Assembly (NCBI RefSeq): GCF_001194135.2
Contig: NC_068986.1
Span: 74,191,884-74,255,883, forward strand
From: Octopus bimaculoides
Taxonomy: Eukaryota
DNA length: 64,000 bases
Reading direction: 5' to 3'
Shown: positions 3,910-57,691 of the stretch, piece after piece
Position numbering within the stretch: the first letter of the stretch is position 1
How the letters are laid out: every line of letters begins with the position of its first letter
The notes under the pieces: generated by a model
Told to the model about the DNA's origin: nothing
The model's input: the letters and a program-made list of their open reading frames with translations, nothing else
The model's database searches: none
Made by a program: the position numbers and the translations under genes

Positions 3910-4402
3910 CCCTTTAGCTATATCTGGCCTAGATATTCTACCTATTTTAGTGCAATGTTATTACCAGTTCAAATATGCCAATGGCACATTCTGACTTGTA
4001 GACAAGCAATTCACTGTGTTTTGTGATGGAGGAAATTTCTTTCTGTAGACAAACAGTGTAAATACATCTAAATCAGCTCACTGTGCCACCAATCAGTTCC
4101 TGTGACTGAAGTGGAGATAACCACTCTGAATGTTTGCATCTCAGTCTGGATAGATGCCACTGCCAGCATTTATATACATCACTGCTTAGCATTCCCACCC
4201 AACAATCTACCTATTTTATATTCAAACAGCCAGATCCAGCATTTCACACCTACCCTACAATGTTGTTCCAACCCCCCTCCCTCCCAATAATAATAGTAAT
4301 CACATCATTGAAATCTCAAAGCTACAAGATAATGCATGATAATTCAAAACAATGTGAATAGATAAGCATTACATCTGACAGAATAATCTGAGGCCTAAAG
4401 GG
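3910..4402. mobile_element. TTAA MITE with an internal ~250-bp insertion
   Basis: TTAA|CCCTTTAG ... CTAAAGGG|TTAA. Further copies or halves at ~15647-15874, 33165-33325, 33790-33877, 41113-41215, 52620-52746. Confidence 0.75.
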
Positions 4403-4912: not shown

Positions 4913-4973
<61 letters not shown>

Positions 4974-5079
4974 ATTATTTTAAGGAAGAAAGTCAAAGCA
5001 AGACTCCACATTAATTGCGAATTAGCTAATTTCAAGACTAAGATCTTAGATAGATTTTCTATCTTCAGCGCAATATATG

Positions 5080-5357
5080 TGTTATAAACCCAAACTGGAA
5101 TATCTAAATTTAAAAGGTTATAATCAACTAAAAATACAGCAATCTCAATACAAACAAAGATTACTAAATTGTAAGCAAAACCAAACTTCAGCACAATAAC
5201 AGTTTTATGCAGCAAGTTGCTACAGTCTTGACTAACTAAAAACCAACACTGAACACATTGTGCCGCAAACAGAATAGAACTCTATGCAGCTGCACTGCAA
5301 GCAAATAACAGCAATTGAGACAATCAAAATCACGTGATCAAAACTAAAATCACAACA
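5080..5357 (-). repeat. 3' LTR of the Gypsy element
   Basis: TG...CA termini (TGTTATAAACC...CACAACA); direct repeat of 9422-9701. Confidence 0.95.
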
Positions 5358-5369
5358 TTTTCCCCCTCT
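5358..5369 (-). promoter_or_regulatory. Polypurine tract (AGAGGGGGAAAA) for plus-strand priming
   Basis: Purine run directly abutting the 3' LTR on the element strand. Confidence 0.85.
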
Positions 5370-5659
5370 AAAGAAAAAGAACAATTAACCAACAAAATGC
5401 AAAATACAAACATAACCATGAGCCAACAACGTAATGATGTGGCATTTCATAAGCGTAACACATTATCAATCAGAAATTTAACCTATCAGGAAATTTTTTT
5501 TTGTTCTGGATGAATGCCAGTGCAAAGTAGTTTCAGGTTCTGGTTCTTGGGCTGGTGTAGGTGGGACAGAATCAGTCACGGTATCAGAAAAACCACCACG
5601 GTGCTCATGCATTTGAGTAGGATCAGTGTCAGCAACATCGGTTTGATCCCTACTTAACT

Positions 5660-8600
5660 GATACTCACTCCTCAGTCATTTTGCCAGTAGGAGCTAAATC
5701 TCTAATGGACACAGTACTTTCACATCCATCTGGGTACTGCACCCTCCCATGGTTAGGGTTAATTTGCACCAATTGGGCTTCATCTACTAATAGATCATAC
5801 TTATTGCATACATGTTGTTTAACAAACACTTTGTCAGGTCCTTGCATTAACCAAGTAGGAACAGAAACACCACACATAGAACATCTGGGAAATTTAAAGA
5901 ATCTCTCATGCGGGGTCTCATTAGTTGTTGTGCATAATAATGAATGTTGTGAATGCAAAACTTCTGGAAGCACAACTTCCCATTGAGAAACTGGTAAATT
6001 TCTGCTATGTAAGGCCAATTTAATGGAATTCCATATTACTCCATTATACCTTTCACATTCAGCATTTCCATGAGAATTGTACACCATAGAATGAGTAATC
6101 TATATACCCCTATCGTACAGAAATTGTTTAAGTTCTTTAGATACAAAACATTTAGCATTATCACTATGAATAACTGCAGAAAATTTGAAAAGATTAAACA
6201 AAACCTTCAAATTACTAATAACGGAATGAGCACTAGTATCAGTGCATGGAAAAATAAATGAAGAACATGAATACTCTTCCACAACAGTTAAAAAATAATG
6301 GTTCTTTGATACTGAAGGTGTGGAGGCGCAATGGCCCAGTGGTTAGGGCAGTGGACTCGCAGTCGGAGGATCGCGGTTTCGATTACCAGACCGGGCGTTG
6401 TGAGTGTTTATTGAGCGAAAACACCTAAAGCTCCATGAGACTCCAACAGGGGATGGTGGTGACCCCTGTTGTACTCCTTTGCCTCAACTTTCTCTCACTT
6501 TTTCTTCCTGTTTCTTGAGTAACACTGCGATGGACTGGCATCTCGTCCAGCTGGGGAGGAACACATACACCACTAAAACTGGGAAACTGGGCCCATGAGC
6601 CTGGCTAGGCTTTAAAAGGGCACATAGATAGATAGATACTGAAGGTAGGGGTCCTTTAAAATCAACACTCAATCTTTCAAAAGCTTGAGTAGATTTAATT
6701 ACTGATGAAACAGAGGTTTTAGTAAAGTGAGGCTTCAACTCACAACATTACACAATTGTTAGTTATATGATTTACACCATCTACAGAGTATAGTAAATTC
6801 TAGACTTTAATATAATGAAATAATCGTGTGATCCCAGGATGACACAGTACTGCATAAACACAGTACAGTTCATTATCAGTCGTAGCTGTGCAATATGTAT
6901 ATGATAAAGCATCTGATGCAACATTAAACTTACCTTGGTGGTAAATATCAAATTTATACTGGGCTAGTTTGATTCACCAACGTATTATCTTTTCATTTTT
7001 AGGTCTACTGTACTTTTGACAATTAAACATAAAAGCAACACTGTTTTGATCACTTATTAGTGTGAAGTTACATTCAAAAAGAAAATGAGACCATTTTCTC
7101 ACAGATTCTACAATCGCCATCGCCTCTTTTTCAATACAAGAATAACAACGCTCACTTGGGTTGAGAGTTCTTCAAAAAAATGCAACTGGCTTTCCATTTT
7201 GGTGTAAAATGCCAGATATAGCTAACTCCGATGCATCTGTTTCTATTGAGAAAGGAAGACTTTCATCAACCGTTTTTAAGGTAGCATTTGTTAAATCATC
7301 TCGTAAAGCTTTTAAATTTGACAAGGCTTGTTCACTCAAAGGAAAATATTTAGTATCAACCAACGGTTTTATCTTTTCAGAGCATTTTGGAATCCATTTG
7401 GAATAATATGCAAATAAACCAACAATTCAACTCACTGTTTTGTGGGTACTAGGAATAGGTAGTTCCAACAAGGGTTTTACCTGGTCAGGGTCAGGCTTCA
7501 AGTTATCATTTTGAATTTCATAGCCAAGCAATCGAATCAGTGTAGCGCTGTAAATGCATTTGGCATCATTAAAAGTTATATTACAGTCTTTAGTAACTTG
7601 AAGAAAATGCTTTAAATTTTGATCATGTTCTTCCTTCGATTTACCACACACAGTTATGTTGTCGATATATGCAAAAGTAGCTCTACAATTATGGCTTTCA
7701 ATTATATTAGCTATCACTCTCTGGAAACAGGGCACTGCATTTGTAAATCTGAAAGCAATATGTTTGCTTTGATATAATTTTCCCTGTGCTTTGAAAGGTC
7801 GACCTTCAACTGGAATCTCAACTTGATGATATGCACTTTAAAGATCCAGTGTGCTAAAATAATTAAATTGAGCTTTTTTTGTGACCATGTCATGCATATT
7901 TGGCAGTGGATATCCATCTAATTGTGTAAACTTATTTATAGTCTCACTATAATCAATACACAGTCTCTTGTGATGATTTTCTCCTGATATTACCAATACC
8001 TGGACTCTCCAGGGTGAGACACTGGGTTCAATTACCTGTTCTGCCAGATCGTGGCTTATAGTATCAGCAATAAATTTTTCATTATTGGCGGACTGTCTTC
8101 TCAATTTTGTAACTTTGGGTTTACAGTCAGAGTTTAAATTTCAAACAACCTCAGTGTAATGCAATTGAGAGCTCCCAAATGTAACGGGGGCTTGTTGCCG
8201 TCAAAAGTAATTTGTACATGTTGATGCTGTTTTAAGAAATTTTGTCCTAAAATTACATCTACAAACAAATTATCAAGTACCACCAACTTTACTTGCTCGT
8301 AAATTCTTCCTTGAAGTTCAATTGAACCCATACAAAAACCGTCGCTTTGGGAATGATTTCCATTGACAGCCATGTTAATTTCATTCCTTTCGGACTTCAC
8401 CAATAATTTGGTTTTCTTTTTTTGCAAAGTCTTTGCTAATATGATTCATAGTTGAGCCGGTATCAATCAAAGCAAATGCTTTCCATACCATCAACTGTTA
8501 TTGTATAATTAACTTTAGTAGCAGCTCCACCTTGATATAAAACCACGGCAAAGTTGCCATCAAGAGCTACTGATATCTTATCAAAATTTTTGCGGTTACT

Positions 8601-9388
8601 TGACCAGCATTCTTGAGCAAAATGACCAAAATATCCACATTTGTTACACTTGCTCCACCTAGTGGGAAACTTAAACCTCAGATGAAAATCATTAGATCTG
8701 CAAAAGGGGCAGGACTTTTGCATTCATTTTATTGCTGCACAAGCTGTGTTTCAGTCAGGAATTGAGATTTTGTCTTCTTCACATGGAATAAATGTTGACG
8801 AACAGCTTCCCTGGCTATTTATATCAATATGACTGCTATTATACACTTCGGAATTCCTTTGAGCAACTTCCAGTGTGTGAGCTTGGTTAAATATTGCTTC
8901 TAAAGTTATCACCGTATCTTGAACATTTACTAAAAGTCTAAGGTGAGTTGAAGATGACGTTAATGCTGAGATAAATGCGTCACAAACAGCTTCATTGTTA
9001 TGAGTCTCAGTGTCCACTGCTCTGTACCCGCAATCTTTAGTTAGTCATTTCAATTTCTGTAAATAGTCGTCAACAGATTGACTTGGTTCTTGTTGGCACG
9101 TCATTAAAAGGTGTCTTGCAAAAATAATGTTCAAGGGTTTCACGTACAGTCTCTCCAGAGTTTGAATTGCTTCTGCGTAATTCTCATATTCATTTATGAG
9201 TTCGTAAACATCTTTATCTAAGTGCGCTATTAAACACCTAATCTTGCTTTCATCAGTGAAAGGCAGTTCAGGTGGAAATGATTCTAAAAATTTTTTAAAG
9301 TTCTGAACCAATATTTCCATTCTTTTGAAGCTTGACTCGAACTTGGATCAGTGGTGAACAAATTTTGTTTTATAGATTTACTGTCTAT
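5660..9388 (-). pseudogene. Fragmented gag-pol of the Gypsy element
   Basis: ORF-track fragments 9045..9320 (gag), 8463..8723 (CCHC), 8134..8427 (protease), 7838..8104 and 7427..7735 (RT), 7172..7363 (RNase H), 6484..6738, 6100..6282 and 5665..6087 (integrase), separated by frameshifts and stops. Confidence 0.93.
6320..6634 (+). mobile_element. tRNA-derived SINE nested in the Gypsy integrase
   Basis: tRNA-like head GTGGAGGCGCAATGGCCCAGTGG..GGTTTCGATT, (AGAT)n tail, exact 12-bp TSD GATACTGAAGGT (6308-6319 / 6635-6646). Confidence 0.92.
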
Positions 9389-9421
9389 TCTCTCTTTCTG
9401 GTTATTTTTAGTTGATTAAAT

Positions 9422-9701
9422 TGTTATAAACCCAAACTGGAATATCTAAGTTTAAAAGGTTTTAATCAACAAAAAAATACAGCAATCTACAATACAAACA
9501 AAGATTGCTAAATTGTAAGCGAAACCAAACTTCAGGACAATAACAGTTTTATGCAGCAAGTTGCTACAGTCTCGACTAACTATAAACCAACACTGAACAT
9601 ATCGTGCTGCAAACAGAATAGAACTCTGCGCAGCTGCACTGCAGGCAAATAACAGCAATCAAGACAATCAAAATCACGTGATCAAAACTAAAATCACAAA
9701 A
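9422..9701 (-). repeat. 5' LTR of the Gypsy element
   Basis: Direct repeat of 5080-5357; the outer terminus has a C>A change (CACAAAA on +). Confidence 0.93.
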
Positions 9702-9939
9702 ATATATGAACTTATATTGTGGTGAAGATAGAAGAAAATCTATTTAAGATTTTAATCTTGAAATTAGCTAATTCACAATTAATGTGGTGTCTTTTTAAAT
9801 ATCTTCTCTGTAGCACAATTTCAATCGCATGTATTTATGGAGTTTGTTCAACCTCTTGATAAACTCCGACACTTGGGTCAATTCGTAATGCTCGGACATT
9901 GATTCTGTATGGAGGAGATAAGTGTTGTTTCAACTTTAT

Positions 9940-9977
<38 letters not shown>

Positions 9978-10240
9978 CCTATACGAAAGTCATTATATTT
10001 AAACAAAGTATAAGCAACTTTTCAAGTGAGAATTTTGCTACTTTGATAACAGTTACAATACTTATTTTACCAAATATTTGGTTGATATTTAAATACACAA
10101 GTATATATATATATTTATATATATAATTATTAATTTAATATATAAATTGTTTATTTCCATGCTGACTATCATTAATGTGATTTTTATCCTTATTTTATGA
10201 GTGTATATATATATATATATTATATATATATATATATATA

Positions 10241-10861
10241 GTGATATTTTAAATTCTCAATCGCAGAATAATGCTAATAATATAGCCTGAACAGGATAAA
10301 CTATCCCTATTTTGCAGAGAAAAGTGTAGGTGACTAGCTGTGAACTCGAACTCACATCCCCGTCATTACATGTGACGATGCTTTTGCCGATTAAGGTAAA
10401 CTACCCACTACAAATTCCTCTGCAAATTAAGATATATAAATCTCGCATTATGAGACGCTCTCAAAATATCACTTCTTTAACTTTCTAAAAAAGACATCTC
10501 AACGCTTCTAAAAGCAAGCTCCGCTTGTTTATTTACGTTTGTCGTAATTTGAATTTAATATATAAGAGCATCTCATAAAGCGAGATTTATATATCTTAAT
10601 TTGCAGAGGAAATTGGGTAGTTTAGCTTAATCGGCAAAAGCATCGTCACATGTAATGACGGGGATGTGAGTTCGAGTCCACAGCTAGTGACCTACACTTT
10701 TATCTGCAAAATAGGGATAGTTTATCCTGTTCAGGCTATATTATTAGCATTATTCTGTGATTGAGAATTTAAAATATCACTTCTTTAACTTTCTAAAAAA
10801 GACATCTCAACGCTTCTAAAAGCAAGCTTCGCTTGTTTATTTACGTCTGTCATAATTTGAA

Positions 10862-10872
<11 letters not shown>
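10241..10872. repeat. Foldback plus direct repeat unit (A'-B-A-B) between (TA)n tracts
   Basis: Arms 10241-10461 / 10565-10780 are inverted; 10463-10564 is directly repeated at 10771-10872. Confidence 0.95.
10615..10693 (+). pseudogene. tRNA-like sequence (Thr-UGU-like anticodon arm), degenerate; inverted twin at 10328-10406
   Basis: A-box-like TAGCTTAATCGG, anticodon stem CGTCA/TGACG with 7-nt loop CA-TGT-AA, B-box-like GTTCGAGTCC. Acceptor stem is poor and U33 is absent. Confidence 0.55.
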
Positions 10873-10904
<32 letters not shown>

Positions 10905-27550: not shown

Positions 27551-29425
27551 TATTGGACTCTTCCTTTATTCAATGATGGTTGAAGGTTTTGCATTTTCGA
27601 GCTGTACAGCCACACAGATGATTTGTTCATAGCAATCAAATGCATGTGCTGTACACTATCTCACTTCCTCCATCAAGTGAGCATTGCCTGTACAGGTACA
27701 CAAGCGTTCCACATGTTTAGATGTCACAGTATTTACAGAGCAAGTAAAATGAAGTGTTATGCTCCAGAACTCAACGTACCACCCAGTCTGGGAATCAAAG
27801 CCTTGTGAGTGGATTTGGTAGACGGAAACTGAAAGAAGCCCGTCGTCCGAGACCTTTGGAAATGGGCTGTGCGTGAGAAGACCCGGCAAGCCAAGTAAGA
27901 TCGTTGCCAGTGCCCCTGGACTGGTTCTTGTGCGGNNNNNNNNNNNNNNNNNNNNNNNNNNNNNNNNNNNNNNNNNNNNNNNNNNNNNNNNNNNNNNNNN
28001 NNNNNNNNNNNNNNNNNNNNNNNNNNNNNNNNNNNNNNNNNNNNNNNNNNNNNNNNNNNNNNNNNNNNNNNNNNNNNNNNNNNNNNNNNNNNNNNNNNNN
28101 NNNNNNNNNNNNNNNNNNNNNNNNNNNNNNNNNNNNNNNNNNNNNNNNNNNNNNNNNNNNNNNNNNNNNNNNNNNNNNNNNNNNNNNNNNNNNNNNNNNN
28201 NNNNNNNNNNNNNNNNNNNNNNNNNNNNNNNNNNNNNNNNNNNNNNCAAATCGGACTGGAGCCTGGTGTTGCCATCCGGTTTCACCAGTCCTCAGTCAAA
28301 TCGTCCAACCCATGCTAGCATGGAAAGCGGACGTTAAACGATGATGATGATGATGATGATATGTTTGTGTGTCTGTGTTTGTGCCTCCAGCGTTGCTTGA
28401 CAACTGATGCTGGTGTGTTTATGTCCCCGTAACTTAGCGGTTCGGCAAAAGAGACTGATAGAATAAGTACTAAGCTTACAAAGAATAAGTCCTGGGGTTG
28501 ATTTGCTCGACTAAAGGCGGTGCTCCAGCATGGCCGCAGTCAAATGACTGAAACAAGTAAAAAGAATAAAAAGAGAATATATATATATATGTGTATATGC
28601 ATGAATATAAATGTGTGTGTCTTGTGTCTGTGTTTGCCTGCCACTATTGCTTGATAACCAATATTGGTGTGTTTACATCCCCGTAGCTTAGTGGTTTGGC
28701 AAAAGAGACTGATAGAATAAGTATTAGGCTTACAAAGAATAAGTCCTAGGGTCAATTTCTTCAACTAAAAAGCTTTCTACAGTGGTGCTTCTGCATGGTT
28801 GCAGTCAAATGGCTGAAACAAGTAAAAGAATATAAATATGTCCACACGCGTACACAACAGGCTTTTTTCAGTTTCTGTCTATCAAATCCACTCATAAGGT
28901 TTTGGTCATAAGGTGCCATTCAGTGGTACTGAACCCAAAACCATGTGGCTGGAAAGCAAACTTCTTACCATGCAGCCATGCCCATGACAATAGAAATTAT
29001 ATTCCCAAGCCAGGAATTGAACCTAGGTCACCTTGGTGAAGGCCAGAAATCCTAACCACTAGGTCACATGGGGAATGTAAACTAATCAATGATTAATACA
29101 ATGATAATTGTAATGATGCTGAACATGATTATAATGATGATGATGAAATTATATACATTTGTCTGTCAATTATTTATCCCTGTCAATTATATTTGGCTGT
29201 TAAATGAAAGTTAACAAACCAATAATATCTTTGAAATTATATATCCATTATTATTATTATAACATATTTGATCATTTCACTTTGATCCAACCTCATTTCT
29301 TCTATATTGCTGTCATTCATCTTTATGTTCATAAAATTATAAATATTTGATGTCTATTTAAACGATTAAGTGGCTAGTTGTAAGGTTCAATATTTGTAGT
29401 TAGGTAACTTGTACAACACATAAAC

Positions 29426-47010: not shown

Positions 47011-48778
47011 TCTACTACATATGTGGAAATCTGTGGGTGAGTTTGTTTGTGGCCTTGTTATCTAACTCCTCCTACATCGTTTTATCGATTTTGATGAAAC
47101 TTGACACGTGAGTAGAACTCATGTCTGGAAAACTAGGGCTCCTGGAAGGGATTTCATATCAACTACATATAACTAATATATTATTTTTAAACGTCCAAGG
47201 GAAATAGCCCATTCCCTCCTGCAAATAGACCCTTATATATAGCCAAGGGAAATAACCCATTCATGTTCATAAAGTATTTCATCTTAGTCAAATTGAGTAT
47301 GCTTATTTCTTAGTATTTGAACTATTTAACTTACTTTCGCAATTTATCCAGTACAATGCTTAACCCTTTCGTTACTATATTTCTGACCAAAATACACCCC
47401 TCATGAGTTTCAATTAAATTCTAAAATAATCATGAATTTAGACTAGTCTCATTAAACACCTGTAACTTTTTTATTTATCAACACATTAATGTGATATTTG
47501 GAACATAATTAAAGAAAGGGTTCTTAATCAATTCTATTGCATAATATTTGTCTCTGGGGTACTGCTAGTGTCTCTCACATGTAAATATTGGTTCAGCTTC
47601 ACGAATCGTACTCGTTCATAATACTGGAAATATATTCATCGCCAAAAGGTACCTGATCGCTCCAGTAATTTGTTATTCTGGGTAACTGTCTAATACCCAT
47701 AATAATATTTATGGCAAAAAATGCCCGTATTTCACNNNNNNNNNNNNNNNNNNNNNNNNNNNNNNNNNNNNNNNNNNNNNNNNNNNNNNNNNNNNNNNNN
47801 NNNNNNNNNNNNNNNNNNNNNNNNNNNNNNNNNNNNNNNNNNNNNNNNNNNNNNNNNNNNNNNNNNNNNNNNNNNNNNNNNNNNNNNNNNNNNNNNNNNN
47901 NNNNNNNNNNNNNNNNNNNNNNNNNNNNNNNNNNNNNNNNNNNNNNNNNNNNNNNNNNNNNNNNNNNNNNNNNNNNNNNNNNNNNNNNNNNNNNNNNNNN
48001 NNNNNNNNNNNNNNNNNNNNNNNNNNNNNNNNNNNNNNNNNNNNNNNNNNNNNNNNNNNNNNNNNNNNNNNNNNNNNNNNNNNNNNNNNNNNNNNNNNNN
48101 NNNNNNNNNNNNNNNNNNNNNNNNNNNNNNNNNNTCAAATGTACATTTAAATAACAATGGGTACTCTCGGACGGCTACGGCCGGGTTGGTCTTATGAACT
48201 AAAAATTTTTTCGGACGGCTACGGCCGGGTTAGTAACGAAAGGGTTAAACAAGCAAATAATATTTTCTTAAACAATAGATTCACTTATTTTGGTTAGTAA
48301 CTTATTCATGAGTATACTAACACTAGCGCTGCTGAGGGTAACATTCTTTGCAAATGCACAAAAGCTTTTTTCAGAGTTATTTACTTTGAATTATTATCTC
48401 ATCTGATTAGCCTGTTATTACATAACATGTTTTGTGATTTTAGTATACATACCTTATCAGTATTTCCTCCTAAGTTCTATATACTCTGGGAATGTATTAA
48501 AGCCCTTTTCATTGCTACTTTATCTGAATTCTTACTATCGGGTAATTAATTTCATGTTATTACATAACTGACTTCACAATTTGAATATTCATAACTTATT
48601 TGGAATTCCTAAAAACAAGATCCTGTGTAAGACAGTTCACTATCCTCAATAAATGCACAAAAACCGTTTTAAAGGCTATATACTTTTTATTGTTGTTACT
48701 GGATTAGTGAAACAATTATGAGATTTGAACCAGGGGGTAAGCCCCACTTTCCTGGGAATTACCGGGTATGTCAGCTAG
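47011..48778 (+). mobile_element. Non-autonomous Helitron-like element (contains the piggyBac insertion)
   Basis: 5' TC start (TCTACTACATATGTGGAAA) and typical ..GATTTTGATGAAACTTG; 3' hairpin CCTGG-GAATTA-CCGGG followed by CTAG at 48775-48778. Confidence 0.65.
47364..48244 (-). mobile_element. Internally deleted piggyBac element
   Basis: TTAA TSDs, 14-bp perfect TIR CCCTTTCGTTACTA / TAGTAACGAAAGGG, subterminal direct repeat GGACGGCTACGGCCGGGTT (x2), transposase fragment EIRAFFAINIIMGIRQLPRITNYWS. About 400 N inside. Confidence 0.92.
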
Positions 48779-56138: not shown

Positions 56139-57303
56139 CAACTTAAAGAATTTTAAAAAATGTATACGGTGGTGCTCCAGCATGACCGCAGCCACATGAT
56201 TGAAACTAGTAAAAGTATATGCACATATATACATATAAATACGCACGCACACACAGTGAAATAAAAATATATGTCTATGTGCAAAGTTGCATCAAAGCAA
56301 ACAACGCTAACTTGTGAAGTTACATAATTTTAAGCAAAAGGTGTATTAAGTCATTTGATAAACAGAGATGGAATAAATAAGTTACGGATTATTAATTTAC
56401 GACCTTATACACTATACCATGCCTTAAACAAGAAACAGCAAGTGCCAAGGGAAATAACTCTGTCGAGAAATATGTATAAATGTAATACAATAATTACCTA
56501 AAAATTCACAGTGTTGTTGTTGTTGTTATTATTTCAAAAGATATTATGTATTCTATGTATTTTAAATATGTGATTATTTCAAAATTTTACCGAATGAATA
56601 TGTTTTTATTATGTTTTTAAAGAAAAACATATGCATGTTTACTGAGACAGACGAGAGATAGAAAGGGACATAATTAAAAATTTGTAGGAGTTATTGCCCT
56701 TAGATAATTCTTCACTTTGCTGTCTTTTCAATTTGTTTTTCTTTTATATGAAATCCATAGATATAAAAAAAATGACTTATCACATGATTATTTCTAATGA
56801 CCTAAAGGAAACAAGAAATCCTAAAGGACTCTAAAGCTGAATATAATTATAGATATTTTATAGCGTTGATGCTGCAGCCAAAAGTCTCTGCTTTCATTAA
56901 TTCACAAATAATTTGCATGAAATAAAATGGAAGAACAAATCTATAATACATAATGTAATATATACATAATANNNNNNNNNNNNNNNNNNNNNNNNNNNNN
57001 NNNNNNNNNNNNNNNNNNNNNNNNNNNNNNNNNNNNNNNNNNNNNNNNNNNNNNNNNNNNNNNNNNNNNNNATATATGCATGCATACATACATACATACA
57101 TACATACATACATACATACAATGGACTTCTTTCAGCTTCTGTCTATCAGATCCACTCACAAGGCTTTGTTCGACCCAAGTCTATAGTAGAAGATACGTGC
57201 CCAAACCCAGCACCATATGGTTGGGAAGCAAGCTTCTTACCACACAGCCATGCCTGCGCCTATGTATAAACTTCCTTTTCATTTGTGTTTATCCTATGAC
57301 TTT

Positions 57304-57691
57304 GTGGAGGCGCAATGGCACAGTGGTTAGGGCAGCAGACTCGCGGTCATAGGATTGCGGTTTTGATTCCCAGACTGGACGTTGTGAGTGTTTATTGAGC
57401 GAAAACAACTAAAGCTCCACGAGGCTACGGCAGGGGATGGTGGCGAACCCTGCTGTACTCTTTCACCACAACTTTCTCTGACTCTTACTTCCTGTTTCTG
57501 TTGTACCTGTAATTCAAAGGGTCAGCCTTGTCACACTGTGTCATGCGGAATATCCCCAAGAACTATGTCAAGGGTACACGTGTCTGTGGAGTGCTCAGCC
57601 ACTTGCACGTTAATTTCACGAGCAGGCTGTTCCATTGATCGGATCAACTGGAACCCTCGACGTCGTAAGCGACGGAGTGCTAACAACAACA
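57304..57691 (+). mobile_element. Full-length tRNA-derived SINE (same head and core as 6320, different tail)
   Basis: Same 5' start GTGGAGGCGCAATGG, (AAC)n tail, 14-bp TSD TATCCTAYGMCTTT with 2 mismatches (57290-57303 / 57692-57705). Confidence 0.9.

Follow-up and report, generated by a model that had tools for sequence, protein, structure and literature searches.

A Decayed Ty3/gypsy Element in the Octopus Window

The window analyzed here, i.e., the whole 64-kb stretch of Octopus bimaculoides DNA, harbors on its minus strand a long terminal repeat (LTR) element of 4.6 kb in which the sequence following the 5′ LTR is complementary to a motif within the LTR itself. The two LTRs are direct repeats of the TG..CA type featuring 93.5% identity. 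Their boundaries were set from the junction between the polypurine tract and TG and from the CA end, in comparison with relatives of the element; the junction, GGGG(A/T)GAA directly followed by TG, is common to the window copy and these relatives. Three-frame translation revealed the domain order gag (with a CCHC knuckle), aspartic protease, reverse transcriptase (RT), then RNase H, and lastly integrase, which is that of Ty3/gypsy elements, and the Pfam families RVT_1, RT_RNaseH, RT_RNaseH_2, rve, and gag-asp_proteas were matched in Ty3/gypsy order. Besides the domain order, the TG..CA LTRs, the polypurine tract, and a short target-site duplication (matching at four of five positions) assign the window copy to Ty3/gypsy (Metaviridae); clean 5-bp target duplications (GAACG and GTCAG) were found in relatives. 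For a close relative, the best match among solved structures was Ty3, both for RT-RNase H (7q5b; E = 9e-60) and for the integrase (4ol8; E = 1e-49).

The integrase of the window copy carries the motif DFKGPLP, and a chromodomain (PF00385) was not found in its integrase fragments. The copy is long dead and inactive, because its gag ATG is mutated, its reading frame contains nine stops and at least four frameshifts, and a short interspersed nuclear element (SINE) resides in the integrase. The window element represents a degenerate member of an animal Ty3/gypsy family that lacks the chromodomain.

Complementarity Between the LTR and the Sequence Behind It

On the plus strand, positions 9403-9418 read TATTTTTAGTTGATTA, the exact reverse complement of TAATCAACTAAAAATA at positions 5121-5136. 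The terminal letters of the 5′ LTR on the element strand are ..TTTATAACA, followed by a single A (9421) and then by TTTAATCAACTAAAAATA. By position, this complementary block is the putative primer-binding site, since minus-strand synthesis must start beside it for the LTR to end in CA. The copy of the motif residing in the 5′ LTR (9463-9479, TAATCAACAAAAAAATA) features one substitution and a 1-nt insertion relative to the binding site, and the motif copies of the two LTRs drifted at different positions, the 5′ LTR having GATTAAA and the 3′ LTR GATTATA. Read together with the binding site, this difference suggests that the ancestral duplex probably comprised 18 nt (TATTTTTAGTTGATTAAA / TTTAATCAACTAAAAATA, 9403-9420).

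Most of what a first-pass annotation of the same DNA had described for this region was borne out by direct comparison, namely the exact match of the 16-mer, the two changes in the motif of the 5′ LTR, the absence of a tRNA-type binding site starting with TGG next to the 5′ LTR, and the beginning of gag homology 33 nt past the LTR, which coincides with the mutated start codon. The gap of three nucleotides (ATT) that had been placed in front of the binding site needs correction, the complementary block starting 1 nt after the LTR end, and the proposed 16-nt duplex holds as the exact match of today, while the ancestral length was probably about 18 nt.

Allowing up to two mismatches, 5121-5136 and 9403-9418 are the sole two matches of the motif in the window. 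Shuffled versions of the window yielded 0.34 matches on average at the same threshold, and two or more in 3 of 100 shuffles; the significance of the complementarity in the window, therefore, rests on its exactness and position and not on the match count.

Table 1. Features of the LTR element on the Octopus bimaculoides window (positions in the window; sequences on the element strand).
Feature	Position	Strand	Remarks
Putative primer-binding site, TTTAATCAACTAAAAATA	9403-9420 (read 9420-9403)	minus	Complementary to the LTR motif
Spacer, single A	9421	minus	Between the 5′ LTR end (..ACA) and the primer-binding site
Presumed self-primer motif of the 5′ LTR, TATTTTTTTGTTGATTAAA	9461-9479	minus	Ends in ATTAAA; homologous to the 5′ arm of all aligned relatives
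Self-primer motif of the 3′ LTR (presumed), TATTTTTAGTTGATTATA	5119-5136	minus	16 of 18 nt (5121-5136) exactly complementary to the primer-binding site
Predicted hairpin between primer motif and LTR end	9427-9454	minus	RNA fold; would be R′/U5 and template of minus-strand strong-stop DNA
5′ LTR	9422-9701	minus	TTTTGTGA...TTATAACA; ancestral start TGTTGTGA
3′ LTR	5080-5357	minus	TGTTGTGA...TTATAACA; directly preceded by the polypurine tract
Polypurine tract, AGAGGGGGAAAA	5358-5369	minus	Immediately upstream of the 3′ LTR
Target-site duplication, 3′ side, CATAT	5075-5079	minus	Partner TATAT at 9702-9706; 4/5 match
gag-protease-RT-RNase H-integrase reading frame, decayed	5665-9388	minus	Native stop at 5665-5667
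gag start codon, ATG mutated to ATA	9386-9388	minus	From alignment with ATGGACAGC.. of L001 and L002
RT motif YIDN	7658-7669	minus	
Nine in-frame stops	9045-9047, 8751-8753, 8724-8726, 7838-7840, 7427-7429, 7172-7174, 6974-6976, 6800-6802, 6100-6102	minus	
Frameshifts, at least four	near 8465-8475, 8381-8390, 8134-8140, 6740-6750	minus	
tRNA-derived SINE, 315 bp	6320-6634	plus	Foreign to the LTR element; splits the integrase after DFKGPLPSVS

Relatives of the Element

Using the stitched RT-RNase H-integrase translation as the query, more than 1,000 homologues were obtained, typically encoding a single gag-pol open reading frame (ORF) of approximately 1,200 aa; named hosts were Mytilus, Hypanus, Scyliorhinus, Actinostola, Armadillidium, Macrosteles, Ischnura, Trichinella, and Trichobilharzia. 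The family spans elasmobranchs, insects, crustacean-associated and cnidarian-associated samples, molluscs, and worms. In total, 89 related loci (L001-L089) were examined, and 5′ junctions were readable for 30 aligned relatives and, by eye, for L019, L024, L086, L087, and L089, with protein identities of 37-59%. L009 was excluded from the counts, its junction crossing an artificial contig join, the Actinostola locus L088 was too rearranged to read, and the Logan contigs L083-L085, as well as several JGI contigs, represent LTR-collapsed or circularly permuted assemblies.

At every readable 5′ junction, the sequence beginning 1 nt after ..CA is complementary to an LTR motif located 21-68 nt upstream. 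The exact complementary run comprises 11-18 nt in the relatives, compared to a mean of 3-7.5 nt and a maximum of 9-14 nt after shuffling. The letters of the LTR arm and of the binding site differ from lineage to lineage while the pairing stays, as represented by L003 (TGAGTCGTTTAAA and TTTAAACGACTCA), L026 (ATTATGTTGCTGATTAAA and TTTAATCAGCAACATAAT), L089 from Hypanus sabinus (CTTCCAGTCAATAAAA and TTTTATTGACTGGAAG), and L086 from Ischnura elegans (ATTCTTGCTGAATAAA and TTTATTCAGCAAGAAT). Between LTR and binding site, 25 of the 31 aligned sequences (the 30 relatives and the window copy) have A as the spacer base, and the others have G or T. Clean 5-bp target duplications in L087 and L089 pin down the end of the LTR and confirm the one-base spacer. 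The L012 contig seems to possess two junctions of LTR end and binding site, of which one is located at approximately 3975-4060; they differ in the length of U5 (unique 5′ region), with 31 versus 87 nt from arm to site, and the longer one holds a second copy of the site-like sequence.

The two LTRs of L089 (Hypanus sabinus, CM057979.1; 1763-1974 and 6017-6228) are 100% identical over the aligned 212 bp, with the 5-bp target duplication GTCAG, and those of L086 (Ischnura elegans) are 100% identical over the aligned 132 bp. These values suggest that the family was active very recently in a vertebrate and in an insect.

The canonical RT motif C is Y-x-D-D, and the second aspartate of this catalytic site is usually held to be essential. 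Among 120 relatives (P0001-P0120), Y-x-D-N was found in 77 (YLDN in 56, YIDN in 12, YVDN in 8, and YMDN in 1) and YxDD in 36. The YxDN relatives include members featuring intact ORFs and near-identical LTRs.

Covariation Between LTR Arm and Binding Site

To evaluate the pairing across the family, the 31 sequences were aligned without gaps over 18 proposed pairs, the conserved junction between ..TAAA and RCC and the LTR end serving as anchors. Altogether, 87.8% of the cells were paired, compared to 65.3% after shuffling, and none of 500 shuffles reached the observed value; sliding the partner by one to three columns reduced the proportion of paired cells to 31-46%. Changes on both sides were found for 16 of the 18 pairs, with 122 double-change cells versus 40 expected by shuffling, the pairing being solid over 16 positions and fading at positions 17 and 18. 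In L010 and L008 (both WLWD01), whose leaders (approximately 2395-2500) are almost identical, an arm change from G to T is matched by a site change from C to A, a compensatory pair that arose within a very short time. Furthermore, one position in L025, read by eye, is kept as a G·U-type pair and, therefore, fits pairing at the RNA level.

Given the 35% G+C content of the window, the A/T-rich motif, and the two or more matches in 3% of the window shuffles, chance complementarity might be considered for the octopus copy by itself. This explanation is refuted by the comparative data and its probability is negligible, as the same positional relation is shared, in different letters, by all of the 30-odd relatives and exceeds both the shuffle and the slide controls.

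Absence of a tRNA-Type Primer Site

None of the 31 aligned sequences features TGG at or near the start of the binding site; instead, 25 of them begin with TTTA, 1 nt after ..CA. No tRNA gene was detected by ARAGORN in the window or in 26 related loci. Distinct pairs of primer and site are co-resident in WLWD01 (L005, L010, and L054) and in the sample series Ga0210059/JGI24xxx (L025, L032, L038, L046, L049, and L050), each site matching its own LTR. A conserved host RNA cannot, therefore, explain the binding sites, whereas a primer supplied by the LTR can.

These observations also bear on the possibility that a host tRNA or a fragment thereof (3′ end, internal, or a half-tRNA as in copia and Ty5) acts as the primer, the complementarity to the LTR being incidental. 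Internal-tRNA priming is known for other LTR elements, with half-tRNA sites described for plant Ty1/copia (PMC6317226). However, besides lacking TGG, the sites are A/T-rich, vary within the family at 16 of 18 positions together with the LTR motif, and occur in several different versions within one genome, which, as judged from the site sequences, makes priming by tRNA very improbable.

Poly(A)-Like Hexamer and Hairpin in the Leader

In 19 of the 31 aligned sequences, AATAAA (10 sequences) or ATTAAA (9 sequences) forms the end of the LTR arm, and most of the others end in xxTAAA. AATAAA/ATTAAA is the sole conserved hexamer that is suitably placed for a poly(A) signal; judged from this placement, it probably also acts as such at the 3′ LTR, and pairing with the binding site may mask its 5′ copy. 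No poly(A) run was seen at the end of any related locus, the contigs being LTR-collapsed. Directly 3′ of the arm, RCC(U) opens a small hairpin in most of the aligned relatives (RCCU..AGGY type), as exemplified by RCCUA..UAGGY, ACUAAU..AUUAGU, and GCUU..GAGC, and some relatives feature a second stem ending at the LTR terminus. Folding of the window leader with an ancestral-type arm, which is a hybrid of the two LTR copies, resulted in the long-range duplex plus an internal hairpin (-26.2 kcal/mol, z = -5.85), and the leaders of the relatives fold into a long-range duplex and an adjacent hairpin with z values between -1.8 and -7.3. The hexamer and the conserved hairpin are features that were new relative to the first-pass annotation. 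Upstream of the arm, the LTR is T/G-rich. A conserved, initiator-like A-G located 11 and 10 nt before the arm end was considered as the transcription start and rejected, because the covarying pairing runs 2-7 nt further upstream.

It is known from retroviruses that the poly(A) signal can be concealed at its 5′ copy within a hairpin, such as the poly(A) hairpin of HIV-1. By analogy, the duplex could represent a regulatory or structural leader stem, involved in poly(A) masking, packaging, dimerization, or control of gag translation, while a host RNA primes; the hexamer in 19 of 31 arms and the position of the gag ATG, 0-45 nt downstream of the binding site, i.e., of the 3′ arm, are in line with such a role. 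We nevertheless regard this explanation as rather unlikely, since the 3′ arm begins exactly 1 nt past the LTR end, a position set by the 3′ end of a primer. In addition, no other candidate primer site lies between LTR and gag, several members having hardly anything or nothing besides the arm in this interval, and the site is too variable among co-resident lineages for a conserved host RNA. Masking and priming can, moreover, coexist.

Proposed Priming Mechanism

Based on the comparative results, it is likely that the family, which is widespread in animals and lies outside the Tf1/sushi chromoviruses, primes its own reverse transcription in a Tf1-like manner. According to the proposed model, the 5′ edge of the LTR motif would be at or close to the start of the genomic RNA, whose 5′ segment would fold back onto the primer-binding site, helped by the hairpin directly after the motif. 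The RNase H of the element is predicted to cut past the conserved ..UAAA, just before RCC of the hairpin, and the freed 3′-OH would be extended through the spacer base, U5, and the remainder of R (repeat region), which corresponds to the hairpin region. The resulting minus-strand strong-stop DNA would be very short, its size being that of the loop (approximately 40 nt for the window copy and 21-68 nt for the relatives), and would jump to the 3′ R. Later, plus-strand strong-stop synthesis would copy the RNA primer and thereby rewrite the binding site in each cycle. Such rewriting would account for primers and sites that vary strongly between lineages but match perfectly within young copies, and the 5′ edge of the complementarity is predicted to mark the RNA start.

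Priming might also be accomplished by a 3′ or trans copy of the motif in place of the capped 5′ end. Should the hexamer be a poly(A) signal, transcription of the 3′ motif copy would be certain, whereas that of the 5′ copy depends on a start upstream of the motif; covariation, in turn, does not separate pairing in cis from pairing in trans. However, the hairpin conserved directly behind the arm and the distance of 21-68 nt between arm and site, which is short and constant, fit a local 5′ fold, the Tf1 precedent involves the 5′ end, and the first strand transfer needs an R shared by both RNA ends anyway. Self-priming by a 3′ or trans copy is, thus, deemed quite unlikely.

Several points weigh against Tf1-like priming by the 5′ end. 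Transcription start, poly(A) site, RNase H cleavage, and strong-stop DNA are all predictions from sequence. A TATA box was not found at a fixed distance upstream of the arm in the window or in the relatives, in agreement with its reported absence approximately 30 nt upstream of the motif in the octopus copy, nor was a consistent initiator detected at the 5′ edge of the complementarity in any of these sequences. The family duplex is longer than the 11 bp of Tf1, and the accessory structure is, as modeled, a local hairpin and not the three-duplex ‘pretzel’ of Tf1. The cell counts of the covariation analysis (87.8% paired, 122 double changes) are inflated, because three or four anchors were placed with the pairing in view and some rows represent close relatives. 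Finally, the case against tRNA was judged from the site sequences.

Taken together, the self-priming proposed in the first-pass annotation is supported, since the complementarity between LTR motif and binding site was found in all relatives examined and is kept via compensatory changes, which alignment of family members revealed for 16 of the 18 pairs. A site for the 3′ end of a tRNA, named there as a refuting outcome, is ruled out by the lack of TGG starts (0/31) and by the co-resident sublineages whose sites differ and match their own LTRs. The DFKGPLP-type integrase without a chromodomain was confirmed as well, while the element is, judged by the chromodomain, which none of 20 aligned relatives has, placed outside the Tf1/sushi group. 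A wider proposition can be put forward only tentatively, namely that this is a large animal Ty3/gypsy family, active to this day and without need for a host tRNA, mostly featuring Y-x-D-N, in which one motif of 13-18 nt would serve as the capped 5′ primer, as the means of rewriting the binding site, and as the poly(A) signal, self-priming having arisen or been retained outside the chromoviruses.

Comparison with Known Systems

Ty3 of Saccharomyces cerevisiae shares the domain order with the family and, as stated above, is its best structure match for RT-RNase H and integrase; unlike the family, it has separate gag3 and pol3 frames. Ty3 is primed by the initiator tRNA-Met.

Tf1/Tf2 of Schizosaccharomyces pombe and other Tf1/sushi chromoviruses (Maggy, Skippy, Cft-1, and sushi-ichi) resemble the family in being Ty3/gypsy elements without a tRNA-type primer site. 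As in the family, the sequence following their 5′ LTR is complementary to a 5′ LTR segment close to the predicted start of the RNA, primer and site are separated by additional RNA structure, and some encode a single gag-pol ORF (PMC7175516, PMC10085805, PMC6934838). For Tf1, the primer-binding site was described to pair with the initial 11 nt of the RNA, RNase H to cut between bases 11 and 12, and accessory duplexes to be required (PMC7175516, PMC10085805). Compared to the Tf1 ‘pretzel’, the family features a central duplex and a local hairpin abutting the primer, with a second stem at the site in some members; pairing between the sequence behind the site and the LTR was not systematically sought. 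The family differs from Tf1 in its duplex of 11-18 bp versus 11 bp, and from Tf1/sushi elements in the poly(A)-signal-like hexamer of its arm, in its hosts, which are animals ranging from those of cnidarian-associated samples to insects and elasmobranchs, and in the lack of a chromodomain (0 of 20 aligned relatives and the window copy), the separation being made on the chromodomain.

Self-priming was also predicted for the Tcn1 clade of fungi and non-seed plants and for the TAR lineage of plant Ty1/copia (Houba and Osr-1), as in the family from complementarity between LTR and binding site alone (PMC6317226). Unlike the family, Tcn1 elements are chromoviruses related to Tf1/sushi, TAR elements belong to another superfamily, and neither group originates from animals. 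Elements of the Mag lineage are, similar to the family, compact animal elements of 4-5 kb with short LTRs, often a single gag-pol ORF, and no chromodomain (PMC3286476, PMC6238403). Mosquito members of this lineage, however, possess binding sites for tRNA-Leu, tRNA-Ser, or tRNA-Arg (PMC3286476), of which the family, compared here by description only, has none. Mag, the C-clade, and Cigr-1 were considered from published descriptions, and the family is not assigned here to a named clade. In the searchable literature, which does not include most subscription journals, self-priming was not found to have been reported for any animal Ty3/gypsy family lacking a chromodomain, so that a prior description is possible.

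Insertions and Repeats Surrounding the Element

Flanking the SINE within the integrase are the two copies of a target duplication of 12 bp (6308-6319 and 6635-6646; ACCTTCAGTATC when read on the element strand). The SINE has a (TAGA)n-like tail; two more partial copies of it reside in the window (57303-57499 and 1471-1572). The LTR element itself occupies the center of an inverted repeat (5000-5079 and 9707-9793) with arms of approximately 80 nt that are 92% complementary over 61 nt and, thus, appears to have inserted in the middle of a foldback or MITE-like (miniature inverted-repeat transposable element) palindrome. A second, unrelated foldback (10240-10407 and 10614-10781) has 168-nt arms that are 97% complementary and 206 nt apart, accompanied by inverted repeats that are shorter and nested, and by a direct repeat of 102 nt (10463-10564 and 10771-10872). 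Long (TA)n microsatellites flank the LTR element (4915-4970, 9945-9976, and 10866-10901). The window also contains eight assembly gaps with 1,137 N in total, among them the runs 27936-28246 and 47736-48134.

Implications for the Family and Its Hosts

To our knowledge, Tf1 is the only element for which a demonstration of self-primed reverse transcription exists, and the mechanism was inferred for its chromovirus relatives and one plant copia lineage. If the mechanism proposed for the family is true, tRNA-independent priming would be no fungal or chromoviral oddity. LTR annotation tools relying on tRNA-complementary sites miss or mis-score elements of this kind, for which self-priming would provide an explanation. 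The prediction can be tested directly on the recent copies of Hypanus sabinus and Ischnura elegans, and the compact natural leaders, with 21-68 nt from primer to site, would help to dissect the cutting of RNA duplexes by RT/RNase H. For the animals harboring these elements, self-priming would mean that host defences using 3′ tRNA fragments would not see the family.

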